A DNA stretch of 64,000 nt, taken from Phaeosaccion multiseriatum. Taxonomy: Eukaryota > Protista > Ochrophyta, other classes. Under the pieces are notes generated by a model. It saw nothing but the letters and a program-made list of their open reading frames with translations. It made no database searches and was not told the origin of the DNA. Shown here one piece after another: positions 12,480 to 60,290 of this stretch; position 1 is the first letter of the stretch, and the number at the start of each line of letters is the position of its first letter. Both the position numbers and the translations under genes were made by a program. The stretch spans positions 2,046,001-2,110,000 of the forward strand of contig OZ218951.1 of assembly GCA_965112735.1 (NCBI GenBank), read 5' to 3'.

Positions 12480-13721
12480 TCACCCTTGATTGATGAGATG
12501 GCTCATGCGAGCGGCCTTGGCTTCCAGGTAGCGCTCGTTGTGCGGATTGGGCGGCACCAGCATAGGAATGCGCTCCTCCACCTCCACCCCCGTGGCCCGC
12601 ATCCATTCCAGCTTGTACGGGTTGTTGGTCATGAGAGCGACGGACTTGATGCCCATGTCAGCGAGTATGTGACTCACACACCCGTAGCTGCGGGCATCGT
12701 CCGGCAGTCCGAGGGCCCGGTTGGCGTCGACGGTATCCATGCCGCCGTCCTGGAGGTGGTAGGCGGCCACCTTATTGGCGAGGCCAATGCCTCGCCCCTC
12801 CTGCTGGAGATAGATGACCGCGCCCTCGTGTTGCTTAATGTAAGCGAGGGACGCGTCCAGCTGTTCGCGGCAGTCGCACCGGCGGCTCCCCAGCACCTCG
12901 CTCGTTTGACACTGGTCATGAACCCTCAGAGCGACCTTGTGTTTGCCCCGCAAGTCTCCAGACACCATCACCACCGGCTCGTGTGTAGCCCCTGCTGCGC
13001 TCAAATGCCGATACGCACGCAGGCGGAATGAGCCCTTGTCTGTGGGCAAGTCGCACTCACCCACAAAGGTCGTGACCCCCTCCCCGCCTCTGCTGCCTGC
13101 TGTTGCCCGCCCCAGAAGGATGGAGGAAGGGACATGCGGGGTAGCGTCTCCTCTAACGGCGCCGCCCGCGGGGGTGGTGGTGCTACTACCGCTGCCGCTG
13201 CTGCTCTTGCTACCGCTGCCCTTCCGACAGCATGGGCAGCTGGTGGTGCTCAGCATGGCAGACACGCGGTTTCTCTTTCTCTTTCTAGACACACGATTCT
13301 TCGAGGGCGATGGCGGCCCTTCATCACCCCCATCCTCCTCTGCTCCGTCGCTCCACGCTCCCCCCTTCTTGCGCTTGCAAGTGGTGGTGGTGGTTATCGT
13401 CGTGGTAGTTGTTGTTGCCGCCACAGGCTCGCCTTTCTCCTCGTCCGACTGCAAGTCGCCCTTCTTGGCTTCCCCTACCTGCCCCTTGGCCCCCTCTACG
13501 CCCCCCCCCCCCTCCTCTTTCTCCTCCTCCTCTTCCTCCTCACTGCTTTGCCCACCGCTGTCCGAGATAATCCCCAGTCGCGCGTTGTTCGGCAGAGAGA
13601 CGACCCCTCCAAAGAGATGGACCTGCTGCTGCTGCTGCTGCTGCTGCTGCTTGGCCACTGGAGCTGCTACCACCGGCGCCACCTCCTTCGCCCCTGATGG
13701 TCCCTCGACTATCTCCGACAT
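12480..13721 (-). CDS. ribA: GTP cyclohydrolase II (riboflavin biosynthesis) with a low-complexity N-terminal extension
   Basis: Motifs LPTDKGSF, LRVHDQCQTSEVLGSRRCDCREQL (Zn ligands C-x10-C-x-C), YLQQEGRGIGLANKVAAYHLQDGGMDTVDANRALG, LMTNNPYK and NERYLEAKAARMSH. Confidence 0.95.
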   Translation of the reverse strand: MSEIVEGPSGAKEVAPVVAAPVAKQQQQQQQQQVHLFGGVVSLPNNARLGIISDSGGQSSEEEEEEEKEEGGGGVEGAKGQVGEAKKGDLQSDEEKGEPVAATTTTTTITTTTTCKRKKGGAWSDGAEEDGGDEGPPSPSKNRVSRKRKRNRVSAMLSTTSCPCCRKGSGSKSSSGSGSSTTTPAGGAVRGDATPHVPSSILLGRATAGSRGGEGVTTFVGECDLPTDKGSFRLRAYRHLSAAGATHEPVVMVSGDLRGKHKVALRVHDQCQTSEVLGSRRCDCREQLDASLAYIKQHEGAVIYLQQEGRGIGLANKVAAYHLQDGGMDTVDANRALGLPDDARSYGCVSHILADMGIKSVALMTNNPYKLEWMRATGVEVEERIPMLVPPNPHNERYLEAKAARMSHLINQG

Positions 13722-50600: not shown

Positions 50601-51972
50601 AGTGTGTTAGCCAATTGTTGTGCGTCAAGCGATGGGATGGCAGTGGATGGGGGAGGAGGTTATAGAAGCTATGTTAGTGAAGAGTCCGGGGCTTGGAGGT
50701 ATGCAGAAGGAAGGCTTTGGGTTAGGAAGAGCATCTAAGGAGTGCACTTGAATTGCCCCGAAAGCTGCTTTGTGTGTTTTCCTCAGCACTTGTGGGCGTT
50801 CCCCTCCCCCCCGGCCTCTTAATTCCCTCCCGCATGGATTGGATCGCCTGCCTGCCTTGAGAAGTGGACCGCTTGCATGTTGCTGTGCATAAAAGAGAAA
50901 TGGACGGACCTTTGCTAGTGTGGTTGCCTGCTCTATTTGCCTACGAAGGCCCCCTCCCTCCTTGTCAAGGTCCTGGGGGGCCTTTTCTTGAATGGTTGAT
51001 AGCACCACGTCCTTGCGAGCTTGGAGTACCTTCGGAGGGGGGTGTGAGGGGAGTGGGTGACAGGTGGAGGGGTGAGAGGGATGAGAATGCATGCGAAGGA
51101 AAGGGGGGAAGGTAGTAAGTATCAGCCGTGGTGGTGTGTGAAGTTGGAGGTCAGGAAGGGGAGAGTTTGAATACACCTGCTTGAATACACCTGTAGCCCG
51201 ATCGGTAGCAACACACGTAGACCCACCTGCCATTTTTGAAGACTTTCCTGAATGGCAAACACATCGGGCACTTCCAAGCCTCCGATGTTGCTCCTCCTGA
51301 TGGGGTGCGCAGTTGTGGGCGGGGAGAGGAGAGGAGGAGAGAGAGAGGACGCGAAAGCGAGGTGGAGAACATCAAAGGGCTGGGAGGCTGTTTGCTGAGC
51401 AGAGTACACAACCCGCAATACGGCCAATCCTCCCTTTGGGATGGACGGGGTTAGATTAAGAAAGGAGGGGTCTGCCGAGACATGATGCCATATGACACTC
51501 TCCCTCCTCCTCCCTTCCCTCCCACCTTCTCTCGCCTCTCACTCACTCACCGGTAGCGGCAGATGAAGGGAACCGTACACGCGTCATCAAGTAGTTTAGC
51601 AACGGCCGTCACGTCGTTTGCGTCCAGCCTCAGCTCTGCGGCCACCTGAGGGGCGAAGCTGCTGCTCATTTTGCTGCTGCTCCTGCCGCCCCTATTTTCC
51701 CCGCCAGCTGCGGGCGTCAAGCGAACACCGCCGTCCGCTCCTTCTCCTGCCCTCTCCCACCCTATCACTCGGCGCCGCTGCTGCTCTGGCCGTGCAGCAG
51801 CGGCTGCTCCAGTCCTGCGGCTGGAAGTGCTCCTCTCTCCCCTCGCTCTCGATAGAATACAGCGAGCCTGGGGCACGAAGGCAGTGCCGCCCGCGCCAAG
51901 TGCCACAGCGCCAAGGCTTAGGAGCGAAGTTGCGAAGAAGCGGCGCTGCGTACTCCTCCTGAGGCCGACCAT
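44622..51972 (-). CDS. Tex/SRBD1-family protein (Tex_N, YqgF-like, HhH and S1 domains), probably organelle-targeted
   Basis: Motifs in order across more than ten exons: [109 protein letters not shown]...[34 protein letters not shown], and S1 [16 protein letters not shown]. The N-terminus has GGTA-FVP. Confidence 0.93.
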
Positions 51973-52459
51973 CCAAGAAAAAAATGAGAAGTTGGCAGTG
52001 GCGGGAGTGCGTGTGTTGGTTGTCTTGCTCACAGATTTTCCAGGGTTCCGCACACGCGCCGGCCGTAATGACGCCAGCCCGAGGAAATGGCGCCCAGCCC
52101 CAGCCTGGTTACTAATTTACACCCAGACCAGCCAACCTCATTGGGCTGATTACTGATTACGGCCGGCGCACACCGTAATCTTGTCCAGGGTCGACAAACA
52201 GCTAGTCAGACCAAGCCGCATAACCGAGGTGACCAGGCCTAGACTTCTCAAGCATAAATTAGCTTAACCGTGCCCTCTGCCCTACGCTGACAATGCACGG
52301 AGCTCTCCCACGCAGTCCTCACCAAACAGCTTGACCAAAGCTTGCACGCCTTGAAGAAGGGCATCGCTCAGTTGCGGCAGTCGGCTACTCTACCACTAGA
52401 TATATAATACTGGAGTACGCCAAAAGAAGAGCGTTTCCAGCAGAACGCCGCGCTGGAAC

Positions 52460-54008
52460 TCACGTAGATGGCGCAGGTGTGGGCGATGCTTGGCTGTTGT
52501 CGATATTAATGAAGACCGAAGTTGATAGAAGCCCGGTCCGCGGTGTGAAGCGCAGGGCCGAGAAGGGAGGAGAAGTGGAGAGAAGAGAGTAGAGTGAGGA
52601 GAAGAAGACTCCGCTTGAGCATGCAGTTCACTTGGGGGCTTACAGTTTGCGGGCGCGGCGGTCGCGATCATCCCCGAAGTCATCTTCATCGCCATCATCC
52701 CCGAAGTCATCTTCTTCGTCTCCGTCCCTGACACGACGCGACGATGGTGTGCAGATGGCGCGCGATGGAGATGGACAGGAGAGGAACGAAGCGCGAGGGG
52801 AGGGGCGGAGAGGAAGGTGTCAAGAAGCAGGCAAGTGTAAAGCCGGGAGAGGAGGGGACGGAGAGAGAAACCCAGGGAGGGACGCAAAGAGGGCGCGAGG
52901 GGGGAACTTACTCCTGCAGCTTGCGGGCGCGGCGGTTGCCAGAGGGCGCAGGTGTGGGCGATGCTTGGCTGTTGTCGATATAAACGAAGACCGAAGTTGA
53001 TAGAAGCCCGGTCCGCGGTGTGAAGCGCAGGGCCGAGAAGAGAGGAGAAGTGGAGAGAAGAGAGTAGAGTGAAGAGGAGAAGACTTCGCTTGAGCATGCA
53101 ATTCACTTGGGGGCTTACAGTTTGCGGGCGCGGCGGTCGCGATCATCCCCGAAGTCATCTTCATCGCCATCATCCCCGAAGTCATCTTCTTCGTCTCCGT
53201 CCCTGACACGACGCGACGGTGTGCAGATGGCGCGCGATGGAGATGGACAGGAGAGGAACGAAGCGCGAGGGGAGGGGCGGAGAGGAAGGTGTCAAGAAGC
53301 AGGCAAGTGTAAAGCCGGGAGACGAGGGGACGGAGAGAGAAACCCAGGGAGGGACGCGAAGAGGGCGCGAGGGGGGAACTTACTCCTGCAGCTTGCGGGC
53401 GCGGCGGTTGCCAGAGGGCGCAGGTGTGGGCGATGCTTGGCTGTTGTCGATATAAACGAAGACCGAAATTGATAGAAGCCCGGTCCGCGGTGTGAAGCGC
53501 AGGGTTGAGAAGGGAGGAGAAGTGGAGAGAAGAGAGTAGAGTGAGGAGGAGAAGACTTCGCTTGAGCATGAAGTTCACTTGGGGGCTTACAGTTTGCGGG
53601 CGCGGCGGTCGCCATTACCCCAGAAGTCATCTTGATCGTCTCCGTCCCTGTTGTTGGCGCAGTTCGTGAGGTCGATGGAGAAGAAACGTCACAGGAGAGG
53701 ACGAAGCGCGAGCCCGGGGAAGTGGAGGCGGCGGAGGCGGATGTCAAGAGAGGAGGAGGTGGAGAGAAGCGCAGGGAGGCGGGCAAAGTGTCGGGGGGTT
53801 GCGAGGCAGAGGAGGGACAGCGGGCCCAAGAGCAGGTGTGGTCGAATGAGGCGACAAGAGCGGGGCAAAAGATTTTTCCCCCTTTGGATGCACATGGAAC
53901 TTACTCCTGCAGTTCGCGGGCCTCGGAGAAGGTGTTAGGGACTCGGGCGGCGCTGGAGAGCACTGCGACAAGGAGCAGGGTGAAGAGAGCGAAGAGAGAG
54001 AGGTTCAT
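52460..54008 (-). CDS. Secreted 158-aa polyprotein precursor: signal peptide followed by RxL|Q-separated acidic and QASPTPAPS peptides
   Basis: Exons 54008-53905, 53647-53591, 53440-53384, 53202-53119, 52968-52912, 52727-52644 and 52493-52460. Every donor is gtaag, every acceptor cag, every intron phase 2, and the total is 477 nt open to TGA. Protein: MNLSLFALFTLLLVAVLSSAARVPNTFSEARELQEDGDDQDDFWGNGDRRARKLQASPTPAPSGNRRARKLQEDGDEEDDFGDDGDEDDFGDDRDRRARKLQASPTPAPSGNRRARKLQEDGDEEDDFGDDGDEDDFGDDRDRRARKLQASPTPAPST. Confidence 0.88.
52470..53650. repeat. Tandem repeat with a 472-475 bp unit, about 2.5 copies (two exons and two introns per unit)
   Basis: Near-identical blocks; equivalent splice sites are 472-475 bp apart. 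Confidence 0.95.
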
Positions 54009-54880
54009 GGTGGGCTTGCGTGGGTTGGGTCCTCTGTGAGATAGCTCCTGTGTTGTTGTTGTGTTGTGAGACACGGGCAACGCTCCCACTCTCTTGGAGC
54101 CCTTTTGGATGATAGTATTCTCGATTGCAAAGGCCGTCCTGCAAAGACCCAAATTTGATGAGCGGGATGAGCACAGAGGCGGGTGGGGTCTTTGCGGCAT
54201 GTACCAGGCTGTGCAGACTGCGAGTGGGCGACTTGTGCCGTCCGCACATAGCTGCGGGGACTACCGCGCACGCGAGATTGGCGAGGAGCGAGGGCTCGCT
54301 CTACAGCACGCCAAGGTAGTCCACTCATCCCAAGGGCTTACTCCTCTTTCGGCCTGAGTGTGTCTTGGTTTTTACGACGCTGGTCATTAAGCGTTAAGGT
54401 GAGCTGCGGAGGAGGGTCTACGGGAAGAAACTGGGAGGGAATCGGATGCTCTTTGCGTTGTTAGCATCATGCCGAAAGGATGCAAGCAGCTTCTCGCGAG
54501 CTAGAAGCGGGAAGGGGCTTGCCGAAGGGCAGCCAGCAGGAGGACGAGGCCCTCAGTTTGGCACAAGTACGGTAGAAGGCCGGACGCAGTAAGACGGACT
54601 TTGCCCCTTGCTCGAACGTCTGAGCTGAAACTGATAGTTAGGCCTATGCCTCTTTAGACACCTTGCGAGTTAACTACTGCTGTGCGCCGCTTCTCCGGTG
54701 AAGGTTTCAAAGCTTGGAGATGAAGCTGCGAAGAAAGAGCGGCCACACCCCCTCTTCCGCGGCTTCTCCTCCCCTCTTTAGAGCCATCCGTGACAACGGC
54801 TGGCAGCCTCCGCCATGCAGCCTCAACCATCCCGTATACTCTCTCAATCGGTGGCGCGGCCCGACGTGCACCGCCGGCCT

Positions 54881-55948
54881 TCAGTCCTCGCAGTCACAGG
54901 GGTGGCCATTGGCGTGCACCCACTGCTTGATGCCCTCAAAGGCCTCATTTCTCCCTCCATCCCACCTGCCTCTGGCGAGCAACCACTCCGGGCACGAGCT
55001 GCTATCCCATGGACACATGACGCTTTCGGACCGCAGCCACTGCAACATTGGTAGGCTTTTGGCGCGCGCGACGGCAATATAACAAACACCCCTGTCCCAA
55101 TCGCAGAGGTCACGAGCATTTGCATGAAGCCAGCACAGCACCTTCAAACTTCCATTCATAGCGGTAAAGAAAGCCGCATCCCGCCACTCGCTGCCTCCTC
55201 CGATCGCCGCAGATTCCAGCTTGGGCCTGACCCTTCGGTGTCTCAGAAGCAAGTCCAGCACATTGATCTGTCCCTCTTGCGCAGCTTCCGTCCCCCTGCA
55301 TTGCCAAACCCCCCAGTCGAAAGGAGCGTTTACCTCATCCGACAACAGCCACGTGAGCATGTCCACGTCCCCTCTCGTTGCAGCTAGAGTGCAAGTCCGC
55401 TCGTCCCACGGACACGGGCTCTTGTCGGGCAGGTCTTCGGAGCGGAGCCACTTGAGGATGCTTAGGCCGTGCTCAGGATTCAAGGCTGCTGCTTCGCACA
55501 CGTCCTCATCCGATACACACCCCATGCGATACAATGCCTGGCAGATACTCAGGTCCCCCCACTTGGCCACAGCACAGAATATTCTGAGACTCAACCGAAG
55601 ACTTGAGTCCAGCCAGCCATCTCTGACGGCCCAGTTGAGACACTCCACAGACTTGAGTACGCTGTGACGAAGAGATGTCACCTGCGAGAGATGAGCGGCG
55701 AAGTAGAGTCTCCGCCACCCCTTGCCCACTGCAGCCACGAAGAAGAAATGCCCCCCCCCCACCATGGCCATGACCTTCAGCATTATTTCCTCAGTCGCAA
55801 GTACTCTAGCTCGGTGTGAGAGCGTCAGGTCCTCGAGGTACGCACAACTCAGAGCAGCAGGGCCAGCGGCAGCGCTAGGTGAAGCTTCGCGTCCATCATC
55901 AGCAGAGAATAGCCTCTTAACGCCGCGCTCCTCGGCCATGAGCAGCAA
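54881..55948 (-). CDS. Intronless F-box-like plus ankyrin-like repeat protein ('HANGHPCxCED' family)
   Basis: Intact ORF (likely ATG at 55939) homologous to 16956-17876 and ending KQWVHANGHPCDCED. Confidence 0.85.
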   Translation of the reverse strand: MLLMAEERGVKRLFSADDGREASPSAAAGPAALSCAYLEDLTLSHRARVLATEEIMLKVMAMVGGGHFFFVAAVGKGWRRLYFAAHLSQVTSLRHSVLKSVECLNWAVRDGWLDSSLRLSLRIFCAVAKWGDLSICQALYRMGCVSDEDVCEAAALNPEHGLSILKWLRSEDLPDKSPCPWDERTCTLAATRGDVDMLTWLLSDEVNAPFDWGVWQCRGTEAAQEGQINVLDLLLRHRRVRPKLESAAIGGGSEWRDAAFFTAMNGSLKVLCWLHANARDLCDWDRGVCYIAVARAKSLPMLQWLRSESVMCPWDSSSCPEWLLARGRWDGGRNEAFEGIKQWVHANGHPCDCED

Positions 55949-56199
55949 GCGCGTTCGCCTCTAGGGCATAAGACTGAGGGCTCGACGGTCGGTTGACCCC
56001 GAATGGATATCCCTCTTTCCCCCCCTCCCTTCGATGGAAAGACTGTGTGCATAGTCCCCCCTCGGGGAAAAAATCTTGCTCCATCCTAGCGCCATCATCA
56101 GAGCGAGGGTACTACCGAAGGAGTGAGCTGTTACGATAGTACCATGGCCAAGAAGAGGGGTAGCTAGCAGTAGTGTGTACGTGAAGGAATACCTGGGGG

Positions 56200-56370
56200 A
56201 GCTTCTGCACAGGGGTTGATAGCGCCCCCTCTGACGCGGAGGAGCCTTCGCCCTGTGCCAACAAGGTGTTGGCGCTAGAGGACACAATACTGAAGGTCCT
56301 GCGCATAGTGGGGAAAGGGCATCACATCTTCGTCGCTGGGGTGAGCGAGGACTGGAGGAGGCTGTACCCG
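56200..56370 (+). pseudogene. 5' fragment of the 'HANGHPCxCED' ankyrin-like family
   Basis: KVLALEDTILKVLRIVGKGHHIFVAGVSEDWRRLY, after which homology stops. Confidence 0.8.
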
Positions 56371-57239
56371 CTTCCTGCAAACTCAAAGCTACCGACTGGC
56401 GCCCGAGCCTCTTGGCAAGGTCAGCTGCCTTCGGGATATTTGGGGGTGTAAAGAGTCATGTTGCTCTCCACATAGGATAGGACTAGACGCATGGACAAGG
56501 AAGTAGCAACCCCAAAGCCAGCCTGGCAGCCAGCCTTGTCTCTATTAGGTTATCTATGGTCCATCCTAAACGACCAATCTGCCGGGAGGTGAGTGAGAAA
56601 CGGGCCACGCACCGTTTCTCATCGTACTGCCTGCGCCTGCAACCCCTGCGAATGCGAGGACTGAGGGCTGGGGGGCGCCGGTGCATGTCGGGCCGCGTCG
56701 CTGCGTGTTCGATGGCATAGTGTGGGGATGGCTCAGGCTGCCGGGACGCTCACGGATGGAAGTAGGCAGCGTACAAAGGAAGAGGATGTTTGTGAGCGAG
56801 GACGGCGGCCACGGGAAGCGGTGCCTGTCAAGCATGCGGCAGCGGTATCTGATGCTCGTCACGGCTTTGGGGGACGTTGCTCTCAGAGGGATAGGCGCCT
56901 TGAACGGGGAGTGTATGAAGGAGGCAGGGGGAGGGGAGAGAGAGAGAAGAAGAGGAATGAGGAAGAACGGGTGGATCTTCAGCCGCAGAGCATCTCCAAG
57001 CTTTGGAGCTTGAAGGAGCTGCACACCGCGGTTCGCTCATCCGAAGCACTCGCGAGGTGCTGCTTTCCGCCCGCCAGGCTGCAAGGCGAGCTTTGCTACC
57101 ACGACGGAACAGGATTTGGGTCACCAGCTAGGCGTAGGATGGACTTGCTGCGGAGGGGGGTTTGCGTTTGGACCTGTGCAGCCCTTCATATTGGAACTGT
57201 GCATAGCCCTGAATATAGCTCAGTATATCGATAGAGACA

Positions 57240-57630
57240 TGGCTGAATGCATCGTGTTCCACAGGCCCGTGCTCCGGCCACACTCGGCCTACTACGTCTT
57301 CTTGAGCCTGACTGATGGCCTTGCCCTCCTGCTGGCTGCCTCTTGGTGGGCTTCCGGAGGAGGTGAAGGGTTGTGAGGCTAGTCGCTCGCGAGGAGTTGC
57401 TTGTATCGATGCGGCGTGGTGCGGAGAACACTCTCCTGCGTGGGAAGAGCTTCGCGATTGTGATCAGAGAGTCGCTCCAACCCTTGGGCCGGTCTGCCAA
57501 TACCCCGAGCCTTTCCTTGCAGCCCCCTCCTTCGTGGCGCAACGTGCTTGATCTCCGAGAGGCACAGCGCTTGGGCCCGAAGGCGAATAGCACTGGCGAG
57601 GAGTGTGCTGCTTATGGATGAACCCCACTA
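57240..57630 (+). pseudogene. Possible degenerate ABC-transporter ATPase fragment
   Basis: IVFHRPVL (Q-loop-like) and RRRIALARSVLLMDEP (post-signature helix and Walker B-like) occur in different frames. No Walker A or LSGG is visible. Confidence 0.3.
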
Positions 57631-57796
57631 CCCATACTCTTCCAGATATTTTCGAAAAGGCTCCGGGACATCGGGACATCGGGAAATTTTTTTAAACGTG
57701 TCCATCTATGCCACCTTTGCTCGCTCCGCTTCTTACACAACCTCCATAACACCGACTTACAGACGCTCAACTGCTCCCAACACCTAAGCAAGCATC

Positions 57797-58262
57797 ATGA
57801 CTCTCCGCGCCATCCTCACGGTCTTCGCCCTGCTCTTCGTGGCAGTCCTCTCCGGCGCCGCCGAAGTTCCTCGCACCCTCGAGGAGAAGGAGGCCCGTAG
57901 CCTGTAAGTTCAACTGCTCCAATCCCATCGCTCGTACTGTGCGCGCCGTTCCTCGGGCTCTCGCGCGCCGACTCTCTGCCCCGATTCCGTGTAGAGCATC
58001 AACTTTCCTAAATTGACCACCTCCCCTCCTTGTCCTTTGCTTCGCCCTCCTTCTCCCGCTCCCCAATGTCTCGGCTGCTGTCCTCCTTCTACGACATTTA
58101 ATCTCACGTCCCGCTTCTCCGTCGCGCTTCACTCCCACCCGGCAACATTCCCTTCTTTCGCCGCTCCGCCGCTTTACTTCCGAAAACAATCCGTTCGCCG
58201 CTCTGCCGCCATCATTCCACGGCTCCGCTCGCGCCTCCCTTCTCGCTCCTCGCACCTCCCTC

Positions 58263-58297
<35 letters not shown>

Positions 58298-58722
58298 TAC
58301 TCACTCTCTCTCACTCTCTCTCCTCTCTCCTCTCTCTCTCCCTCTCTCTCCCTTCCTCCCTCTCTCTCCCTCTCTCCCTGTCTCTCCCTCCCTCGCCCTC
58401 TCCCTCCCTCTCTCTCCCTCTCCCTCCCTGTCTCCCTCTCTCTCCCTCTCCCTCTCCCTCTCCCTGGCCCTTCCGCCTCTCTCCTTTCCTCTCTCTTACT
58501 CCCTCTCTCTGTCGCGTTCTTCATCAACTTCATCGACCGACGACACCACCACACAGCTATGGAAGGGGCTATTATGGCCATGGCTACAAGGGCTACTACG
58601 GTGGCAGGGGCTATGGCTACAAGGGCTACTACGGTGGCAGGGGCTATGGCTACAAGGGCTACTACGGAGGCAGGGGCTACCCCTACTACCGAGGCCACGG
58701 AAAGTATGGAGGATACAAGTAA
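57797..58722 (+). CDS. Secreted 90-aa precursor of a Gly/Tyr-rich cationic peptide
   Basis: Exons 57797-57903 (gtaagt donor) and 58557-58722 (cag acceptor after a long pyrimidine tract), phase 2. Protein: MTLRAILTVFALLFVAVLSGAAEVPRTLEEKEARSL-YGRGYYGHGYKGYYGGRGYGYKGYYGGRGYGYKGYYGGRGYPYYRGHGKYGGYK. The 33-nt repeat encodes GYKGYYGGRGY. Confidence 0.85.
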
Positions 58723-59654
58723 AGTACCACAGGATGACCCAGGATAAGCCGGGTTAGCTACGGAAAGTAGCAAGGAAATATTGCTCTCGGAGCCGAGATG
58801 AGACTAGACATAGACAAGACATGTAAATACAAAATCTAAAGCGCTGCGTACAGGTTCTTTTCCATTATCTAAGCTGAGCTTCGAGGAATATTCTGTTCAG
58901 AGCGGAGAAAGTACAGACGAGAGGCGGCCAAAATTGTGGCGAGTAGAGTATTGCTTATCTCGCTCTCAGACATTCGTTGTGCCTGCTCTGCCCATCTCGG
59001 TGAAGCCCCGCAGGCACGTGGCCGATGCGCACATAGGCGACACTGCTGCACGCACCACCCCGCTCTGCAAGCTTGCAAAGACCAAGTGAGGCCACCTCAT
59101 TTCTCTCTGCCTTCGACCTCAGCGCATTGCTCGGCATGCCTCTCTCTGCTGGAACAGGCGCATTCTCTCATATCCTGCAGGCCGGGATGCCGCTCAGCAC
59201 GCCCCTCCGCACCGCTGCTGCTCGCTCCATAGCGGCGCTTCTTTCGAGCACAGAGATGCGTGAGCGCGCGCCGAATTCCGCGGCGTGCGCTCTCTCTGTC
59301 GCGGCAGCAAATCGAGACCTTTCGCCACACCTCCGTCAAGCCCAAGCAGGGGTATTTCGGCTCCGAGGCGTGGCTTGGGCCAGCCAACATTTCCCTCCGC
59401 TCACCCTTCCACAGCTCGTCGCTCCTCTGGAGATATGGGAGCGCAGCATCGACCAGCCCCATGCCACGCAGCCTGTGAACGCCGCAGCACTGGGTCGTCC
59501 CATTGCGGTTTCATCACCTCTCGATCGCAGCAGCAGGCCGCACACAGGCTCGGGTGCTTACGTGCCTCGTCGGTACTTGTCCCCCCCCCCCACTCAGACA
59601 CATCCTCAGGACGGGTGGTGCAGCGGATCGCTTCTCCCGCTGCAAAAATGGCTG

Positions 59655-59955
59655 CCAGTCCACCTCTTCCTCCGTATTGAAGTAGTGCACCGAGGCCCTA
59701 GCGAAACTGACGTCAGCGAGGCCCCTCCCTGCCGCGTCAAGAACGGTGCTTGTGGGAGCAGACACGGACACGAAGCAAGCCTTGCGGCGAGCGTTTCCGC
59801 GGGGACGCCGCTCATCGTAAAGCTCACCAGCCCTGACATGCGCGGGCCGAGGTCTCTGCAAACGCGAGGCCTCCACCACCCAGTCAGTCTCTCCCGAGGC
59901 TCCACCGCTTCCGCTGCCCGCCTCGCCCCTCCCAACTCATCCAGTGCACAGCCGC
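59655..59955 (-). pseudogene. C-terminal fragment of a class-V PLP aminotransferase / cysteine desulfurase-like enzyme, frameshifted
   Basis: RDLGPRMSGLVSFTMSGVPAETLAARLA / VSVSAPTSTVLDAAGRGLADVSFARASVHYFNTEEEVD matches the SufS/CsdA-type C-terminus (G.VSF...; RAS.hyyNT.EEvD). Confidence 0.7.
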
Positions 59956-59959
59956 GGCG

Positions 59960-60290
59960 ATGCTGGGCCTGGCAGATGCTCACCTCTCCAGTCACGGCTA
60001 GCCCAGGTTGACGGCCCAGTCGAGGCACTCCACAGGCCCGAGCACATTGCGAGTAAGAAACGTGTCCAAGGCGGGATGAGCGGCGTGGCGCTGTACAGCC
60101 TCGTCCAGTCCTTGCTCATCCCAGTGACGAAGCCGTGAAGCTCCTTCCCCACAATGCCGATGACATGCCTCATCGTGTCGTCCAGAGCCAACACGTGGCC
60201 ACAGGGAGAAGGCTCCCCTACGCCAGAGGGGATGCTATCCCCCCCCTGTGCAGAAGAGGCCACTCCTCCGTGTCATTCATGTCCTCCTCC
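59960..60290 (-). pseudogene. 5' fragment of the 'HANGHPCxCED' ankyrin-like family
   Basis: EPSPCGHVLALDDTMRHVIGIVGKELHGFVTGMSKDWTRLYS, then a frameshifted VLGPVECLDWAV. Confidence 0.8.

Follow-up and report, generated by a model that had tools for sequence, protein, structure and literature searches.

How do two neighbouring genes come to begin with nearly the same secretory leader, when the peptides encoded behind it have nothing in common? This question is raised by a locus of Phaeosaccion multiseriatum at positions 52460–58722 of a 64,000 nt stretch of DNA (contig OZ218951.1, positions 2,046,001 to 2,110,000 of the forward strand), which as a whole is called the window here. Two predicted genes are transcribed away from each other at this locus, one on the minus strand (52460–54008; seven exons, product of 158 residues) and one on the plus strand (57797–58722; two exons, product of 90 residues). 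A preliminary description had seen in them a secreted polyanion/polycation pair. In our judgement they are probably, though by no means certainly, paralogous genes for small secreted prepropeptides, in which a duplicated 5' module precedes unrelated cargo, with RXL-type processing and an extracellular role of the products. The window is eukaryotic DNA of approximately 59% G+C and rich in microsatellites. Both gene models were derived from sequence logic alone; the reads covering the locus come from four DNA runs of one sample, are flat at 60–90x over the intergenic DNA and are without splice joints.

A common secretory leader

The two start codons are located at 54008 (minus strand) and 57797 (plus strand), in divergent orientation and with 3,789 nt between them, which agrees with the distance of about 3.8 kb given before. 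The first exon of the minus gene (53905–54008, 104 nt) encodes a signal peptide with a predicted cut after S-A-A and a propeptide of 12 residues ending in A-R-E-L, followed by Q-E and the donor GA/GTAAGTT. Its counterpart in the plus gene (57797–57903, 107 nt) encodes a signal peptide with a predicted cut after G-A-A and a propeptide of 14 residues ending in A-R-S-L, and has the donor CT/GTAAGTT. The coding lengths and the phase-2 gtaagtt donors stated in the preliminary description were found to be correct, and both leader peptides listed there are exact translations. Signal peptides were predicted by a heuristic that considers the hydrophobicity of the core and the residues at -3/-1. Both products have a hydrophobic core of 14–16 residues, with a best 10-residue Kyte-Doolittle mean of 3.1–3.3, and small residues at -3/-1 (S-A-A and G-A-A, respectively); A-R-E-L and A-R-S-L stand 12 and 14 residues past the predicted signal cleavage.

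Aligned as proteins, the leaders reach a BLOSUM62 local score of 68, a value attained by none of 20,000 shuffles, including those in which core and tail were shuffled separately and the architecture of a signal peptide was therefore preserved. For the DNA alignment, 5,000 codon shuffles likewise failed to produce a score as high as the observed one. In a blastn comparison 68 nt of the first exons align at 76% identity (E 6e-12), and a core of 41 nt reaches 85%. A resemblance no greater than that between random signal peptides had been named beforehand as one result that would speak against the proposed two-component system; the resemblance found clearly exceeds this level. Within the window, tblastn and blastn matched each leader only to the other one, and a scan of both strands (128 kb) for the grammar of an ATG, a hydrophobic core, R-x-L and a GT donor found these two starts only. 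The leader-exon search that had been suggested for listing the members of a family was thus carried out over the 64-kb window, where it yielded no further ones.

Behind the leader the similarity ends, and the cargo exons of the two genes show none to each other. The preliminary description was right in calling the cargoes unrelated and their net charges opposite (-7 to -15 versus +10). The minus cargo is not purely polyanionic, however: neutral 11-mers alternate with the acidic peptides, and the tails, RRARKL, are basic. The homologous secretory leader that it had described, consisting of signal peptide, short propeptide and A-R-x-L, is confirmed, and the site recurs at five internal exons of the minus gene. 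A-R-x-L is thereby present at all of the seven junctions between blocks of differing composition.

The minus-strand gene is built from a tandem exon array

From the ATG at 54008 to the TGA at 52460–52462 the frame of the minus gene is unbroken through seven exons, with canonical GT..AG borders, AG acceptors after pyrimidine tracts, GTAAG donors and phase 2 at all junctions. Exon 2 (53591–53647, 57 nt) encodes the short acidic peptide DGDDQDDFWGNGD with an RRARKL tail and ends at the donor CT/GTAAGCC. This exon is a diverged, older copy of the acidic exon of 84 nt, from which it differs in length by 27 nt without a change of frame. Exon 3 (53384–53440, 57 nt) holds the Pro/Thr/Ser 11-mer QASPTPAPSGN and RRARKL, then Q-E and the donor GA/GTAAGTT, and is identical to exon 5 (52912–52968, 57 nt), the second exon of this type. 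A long acidic peptide (net -15 when trimmed), again with RRARKL, is encoded by exon 4 (53119–53202, 84 nt), in which a 27-nt repeat is present in 2.1 copies, and the second long acidic exon is exon 6 (52644–52727, 84 nt). Exon 7 (52460–52493, 34 nt including the stop) encodes a truncated Pro/Thr/Ser peptide, QASPTPAPST, followed by TGA. The order in the precursor is leader, acidic 13-mer, Pro/Thr/Ser 11-mer, acidic 22-mer, 11-mer, acidic 22-mer and 10-mer.

RRARKL, an instance of A-R-x-L, terminates five out of five internal exons. The acidic peptides are composed of D, E, F and G without any Ser and have a net charge of -7 to -15 after trimming of the tails, whereas the 11-mers are neutral. 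Assuming cleavage after Leu, all peptides released from this precursor start with Gln. The donors at 53905, 53591, 53384, 53119, 52912 and 52644 on the minus strand and at 57903 on the plus strand all read xxG/TAAG in phase 2; for this reason an unspliced transcript would run into an in-frame TAA right after each RxL site. The TGA of the minus gene is itself embedded in a donor-like context, GTGAGTTCC. Because this context resembles the other donors, one further exon is possible; none was found down to position 51000, and the next gene starts at 51669. This downstream neighbour, an open reading frame (ORF) at 51550–51669 on the minus strand, contains a motif that resembles the N-terminus of proteins of the Tex/Spt6 type.

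Positions 52466–53638 (minus strand) are occupied by 2.5 tandem copies of a 472-bp unit with 96% identity, the unit consisting of the acidic exon, a 150-nt intron, the Pro/Thr/Ser exon and an intron of 181–184 nt. The internal exons, of 57, 57, 84, 57 and 84 nt, are all multiples of three with phase-2 borders, so that tandem exon duplication preserves the frame. The idea that phase-2 symmetric exons permit amplification of the cargo had been put forward from the exon borders; the 2.5 copies at 96% identity show that amplification indeed took place. Over its last 26 nt and the donor, exon 1 almost matches the end of the Pro/Thr/Ser exon, from which it follows that the array grew from the RxL/donor junction of the leader itself. 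The oldest repeat unit resembles the younger ones from the acceptor of the acidic exon onwards, and the preceding intron is unalignable. The copies of the Pro/Thr/Ser exon have no differences in 57 nt, compared with about eight in 150 nt of the adjacent intron. Furthermore, the 5' part of the minus gene shows a several-fold excess over baseline depth and is covered by variant contigs, which points to more paralogous copies in the genome.

In the classic layout of prohormone and pheromone polyproteins, a short peptide is repeated several times, flanked by basic sites and separated by acidic spacers. The minus gene fits this design and might accordingly encode a signalling polyprotein, in which the invariant Pro/Thr/Ser 10–11-mers, beginning with Gln and ending in Gly-Asn, would be the active peptides and the acidic stretches spacers. 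The Pro/Thr/Ser exon is identical between the copies whereas the acidic exon varies in length (57 versus 84 nt) and sequence, and RRAR is a site of the furin/kexin type. The invariance may, however, merely reflect recent duplication, as the copies of the intron in between are about 95% identical as well. Moreover, the leader sites AREL and ARSL have no dibasic motif, so that A-R-x-L is the common denominator of all sites; no receptor or life-cycle context is known, and the plus gene would be left unexplained. We therefore consider signalling very unlikely as the role of this gene pair.

A Gly/Tyr-rich cationic peptide predicted from the plus-strand gene

The single intron of the plus gene (57904–58556, 653 nt) is for the most part a CT/CA microsatellite and ends with a pyrimidine tract and a CAG acceptor. 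Exon 2 (58557–58722, 166 nt, with a TAA stop) contains a 33-nt repeat in 3.2 copies. The predicted mature peptide has 54 residues with 41% Gly and 35% Tyr (76% together) and a net charge of +10; it has ten Lys and Arg residues, two His and no acidic residue, and its five Lys are scattered, without KxxK clusters.

The G+C content of third codon positions (GC3) is 0.71 in the Gly/Tyr frame versus 0.51 and 0.48 in the other frames, the known genes of the window having 0.65–0.75. The strand skews agree with the orientation of both peptide genes. Strong opposite G/C and A/T skews, of +0.23 and -0.26, were observed at 52001–54000 and 58001–60000; they can be traced to the introns of both genes, which are C/T-rich on the sense strand. 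Such indirect signals for the gene models, namely frame, exon lengths, GC3, skews and the similarity of repeat units, are each modest alone.

Both frames might also be non-functional: they could be open by chance, within a recent tandem repeat and a repeat flanked by microsatellite DNA, or belong to decaying copies of a family with functional members elsewhere. Microsatellites and short dispersed repeats are abundant in the host genome, the tandem copies are recent, all reads are DNA reads and no homologue was found; in addition, the donor-like context of the minus stop suggests that the last unit is truncated. Against this stand two independent starts that both have a full signal peptide, A-R-x-L and a phase-matched donor, when there are no others in the 128 kb of strand searched. 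A frame intact over seven exons, a GC3 signal that is specific to the Gly/Tyr frame, and similarity that in the oldest repeat unit is limited to the exon likewise speak against it. Hence, non-functional frames appear rather improbable to us.

A serious rival is a role in defence or allelopathy. The cationic Gly/Tyr peptide would then be antimicrobial, the leader would be a secretory cassette for diversifying cargo, and the acidic parts would act as neutralising pro-pieces. The genes of frog skin peptides and conotoxins combine a conserved signal/pro exon with hypervariable cargo, a design that the conserved leader exon and variable cargo of the two genes resemble. Fast evolution would also fit the orphan status of the two genes, their multiple copies in the genome and their lack of relatives. 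In composition and size the peptide matches the NLP and CNC peptides of C. elegans; the NLP-29 cluster and CNC are Gly/Tyr-rich antimicrobial peptides encoded in fast-evolving clusters of recent duplicates (PMC2453101). On the other hand, no homology to any antimicrobial peptide family exists, and the acidic peptides cannot be the pro-piece of the cationic one because they are encoded in a different gene. For these reasons we regard defence as an unlikely explanation, although one that has to be taken seriously.

Origin of the pair and the DNA between the genes

The similarity of the two genes extends beyond the first exons. Two pairs of collinear blocks were found upstream of the start codons, one at -574..-520 of the minus gene versus -512..-457 of the plus gene (80% identity, E 4e-9) and one at -500..-449 versus -419..-368 (E 3e-6), and there is a shared 15-mer further up. 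In the window these blocks occupy 54457–54582 on the minus strand (-449 to -574) and, as its partner, 57285–57429 on the plus strand (-368 to -512), both at single-copy depth. More distal similarity, near -850 to -1,150, is situated in DNA of 40x to 300x depth. The upstream blocks 54855–54906 and 56639–56697 were considered as pair-specific promoter motifs and rejected, as a depth of 40x to 300x identifies them as a dispersed repeat. The simplest account of the shared features would be that the 5' module, about 0.9–1.1 kb of upstream DNA plus exon 1, stems from an old inverted duplication. Such a duplication would explain both the adjacency of the genes and their shared upstream blocks, and therefore no functional pairing is needed for either. 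The cargo may have been swapped behind the leader, as judged from these two genes.

An ORF of 352 amino acids with ankyrin repeats (54884–55939, minus strand) is located between the peptide genes. Parts of it, 54772–54955 and 55324–55507, are at 6x to 40x depth, from which it follows that it belongs to a multicopy family, and an inverted partial copy of 90 nt lies at 56278–56367, 485 nt off. Contigs in all four runs join 54249 to 56234 via 32 other letters and so skip the ankyrin region, the shorter side of the join being 28 nt; such contigs probably represent a paralogue or an allele of the intergenic DNA that lacks the ankyrin gene. Positions 56428–56795 reach approximately 300x the baseline depth in four out of four DNA runs and thus represent a very high-copy dispersed element, which has neither an Rfam match nor a second copy within the window. 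The Rfam search across 51000–60000 found no match to a non-coding RNA. As the ankyrin ORF and high-copy repeats intervene, the gene pair is not a compact bidirectional unit.

These observations bear on the two-component system that had been proposed in the preliminary description. According to this proposal the divergent genes are co-expressed and their products co-secreted, forming a complex coacervate for a glue, scale, lorica or mineral-templating matrix. The net charges of the products are opposite, -7 to -15 versus +10, the genes stand head to head, and the common single-copy upstream blocks may be shared cis-elements. There is also a precedent in silica precipitation, where silacidins are polyanions that act together with polyamines (PMC4557024). 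However, the starts are 3.8 kb apart with the ankyrin ORF and high-copy repeats in between, and the inverted duplication alone accounts for adjacency and shared blocks. The charge densities, +10 over 54 residues versus -15 over 24, are to be seen together with the fact that the polyanions are short and have no Ser to phosphorylate, the feature to which silacidins and the worm protein Pc-3 owe their strength as polyanions. They alternate with neutral Pro/Thr/Ser 11-mers, which make up half of the peptides of the minus gene, and might just as well be acidic spacers between these conserved 11-mers. A peptide with 41% Gly and 35% Tyr that is also rich in Arg and Lys could, furthermore, self-associate without any polyanion, and the affinities of the host are to brown and yellow-green algae, lineages not known for building silica. 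That the pair is co-expressed, co-secreted and able to coacervate would be conjecture, and we think it quite unlikely that the two genes form such a system.

Searches for homologues and placement of the host

For the minus product, a word-index search of 5.8 billion proteins, which do not include the host's own proteome, gave nothing, and for the plus product it gave only bacterial Gly/Tyr/Arg look-alikes. An exhaustive phmmer search with the 158-residue minus product against 1.84 billion representatives returned one repeat artefact only. Neither product has a relative in Pfam or PDB. In the JGI metagenomes there was no match, either to a degenerate DNA pattern of the leader or in a protein scan, and the Atlas contained compositional look-alikes only.

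Closest in wording are small secreted bacterial GYGY/GGRGY proteins (metagenomic, P0122–P0128), which have a nearly identical repeat word, GYGYDGYYGGRGY or GGRGYY, compared with GYGYKGYYGGRGY in the alga. They differ from the algal product in having bacterial-type leaders and in belonging to other taxa, and their E values are 4e-3 or worse; the likeness is convergent low complexity and not homology. By language-model features the nearest proteins were mammalian high-Gly/Tyr keratin-associated proteins of the KRTAP6 type, with a score of 0.68 that reflects composition only.

The position of the host can be judged from an intron-less ORF of 413 amino acids at 12483–13721 (minus strand), which contains a GTP cyclohydrolase II domain (Pfam, E 1.5e-55). 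It is 64–70% identical to proteins of brown algae, Chrysoparadoxa and Tribonema, other named organisms being less similar; in the Atlas its matches were confined to bacterial clusters. These relatives place the host as an ochrophyte near the brown and yellow-green algae and not as a diatom. It has no known silica production, and to associate the products with biosilica would be conjecture by analogy to diatoms.

Possible processing and role of the products

Following the preferred reading, of two paralogous prepropeptide genes with an RXL-type leader, the precursors would be cleaved by signal peptidase and then by an endoprotease of the diatom RXL type, cutting after Leu. By analogy with diatoms, such cleavage may be expected at the A-R-x-L sites; RRAR within RRARKL is a possible alternative site for an enzyme of the furin/kexin type. 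The basic tails might be trimmed afterwards, as in silaffin-1A. The minus precursor would then release three acidic peptides of 15–24 residues with a net charge of -7 to -15, as well as three Pro/Thr/Ser 10–11-mers, whose initial Gln makes them candidates for pyroglutamate formation, and the plus precursor one Gly/Tyr/Lys/Arg peptide of 54 residues. We lean towards components of the extracellular matrix or of a cell covering. The Gly/Tyr peptide could serve as a cross-linkable or self-associating structural peptide, with the acidic peptides as counter-ions or spacers.

Several points weigh against this reading. The locus is represented by DNA reads only, and exon joins as well as expression are predicted. 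As no homologue appeared in the collections searched, the reading frames are not backed by conservation across species, and the tandem copies, with 96% identity including the introns, appear too young for clear purifying selection. Cleavage is suggested purely by analogy, and the RXL protease is still unknown even in diatoms (PMC4557024, PMC5525289). Moreover, the function is read from composition alone, and there is a precedent in which this turned out otherwise: the Tyr/Lys-rich AC3362 of the diatom Amphora, chosen for a mussel-like composition, was found to be an insoluble protein of the wall matrix and not a glue (PMC4220933).

Should transcripts and cleavage be confirmed, the layout of RXL precursors would not be exclusive to silica builders, and the RXL protease would be an older, general enzyme of secretory processing in ochrophytes. 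The phase-2 array with one peptide per exon would be a clear case of a polyprotein built by exon duplication, and the duplication of a leader module ahead of unrelated cargo would represent a route to new secreted peptides. A bolder extension holds that a portable secretory-cassette exon launches many unrelated low-complexity peptides, and that the polyanion array and the Gly/Tyr polycation form an extracellular coacervate material. If this were true, RXL processing and charge-paired peptide materials would be older than diatoms and independent of silica, but we give it very little credence. Independently of these readings, a polycation with 76% Gly plus Tyr and Asp-rich 15–24-mers are cheap to synthesise and can be tested as materials or antimicrobials.

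Comparison with known systems

An R-x-L shortly behind the signal peptide is also found in the PEXEL/TEXEL motifs of apicomplexans and in the RxLR motif of oomycetes, which are stramenopiles like the host alga; there it is cut by an aspartyl protease. The minus sites RELQE and RKLQE fit the pattern RxLxE/Q/D. In contrast, the plus site RSLYG does not, the repeated internal sites are without a counterpart in these systems, and those motifs mark export to host cells. An export motif of the PEXEL/TEXEL type was rejected on the grounds that RSLYG misfits and that the host is an ochrophyte of photosynthetic lineage.

Among animal systems, the NLP/CNC peptides are likewise small, secreted, cationic Gly/Tyr repeat peptides, the one described here having 54 residues and net +10, but they have no RxL leader, belong to another kingdom and show no detectable homology to it. 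The cement of the sandcastle worm contains Gly/Tyr/Lys-rich proteins, Pc-1 and Pc-2, and the polyphosphoserine protein Pc-3. Together with the mussel foot proteins it thus offers a similar combination of a Gly/Tyr/Lys-rich polycation with a separate polyanion. It differs from the present pair in that its proteins are of animal origin, its polyanion is phosphoserine, its Tyr is converted to Dopa, and no homology exists. Complex coacervation has been proposed for this cement (PMC4220933).

Diatoms provide the cingulins, which are Tyr- or Trp-rich proteins of the wall matrix, and AC3362. As in the plus gene, these are secreted, aromatic-rich and basic and have an RXL leader. They are, however, long multi-domain proteins without homology to the product of the plus gene, which is a single peptide of 54 residues with 76% Gly and Tyr.

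The closest parallels in layout come from diatoms. The precursors of silaffins, silacidins, cingulins and frustulins have RXL behind the signal peptide and again at the end of their repeat units, and the RRIL/RRNL tails of Sil1p are cut off the mature peptides (PMC4557024, PMC5525289). The criterion used places an R-x-L no more than about 30 residues behind the signal peptide (PMC5525289). Beyond diatoms, the only carriers of an RXL domain in the literature we found are silicanin homologues of Parmales, the sister group of diatoms (PMC10328945). Like Sil1p and silacidin, both algal precursors start with a signal peptide, and their short propeptides end in R-x-L within this limit. Similar to the RRIL/RRNL tails of Sil1p, the charged repeat units of the minus gene each end in a basic tail, RRARKL. 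And as in diatoms, where silacidin is found alongside cationic partners, an acidic repetitive precursor is accompanied by a cationic one (PMC4557024, PMC5525289). The differences are equally clear. No sequence homology to silaffin or silacidin was detected among the proteins, Pfam and PDB searched, and the host is not a diatom. The acidic peptides are made of Asp, Glu, Phe and Gly and are not phosphoserine-rich like silacidin, and the Gly/Tyr peptide is without the Lys clusters that in silaffin are the place of polyamine modification. Since homology, Ser-rich or Lys-cluster segments and known silica are all missing, we regard the two genes as encoding a variant of the RXL-type precursor, and not a silaffin or silacidin. 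What sets this variant apart from both is its tandem array of micro-exons, each encoding a single peptide, with the site A-R-x-L inside RRARKL.

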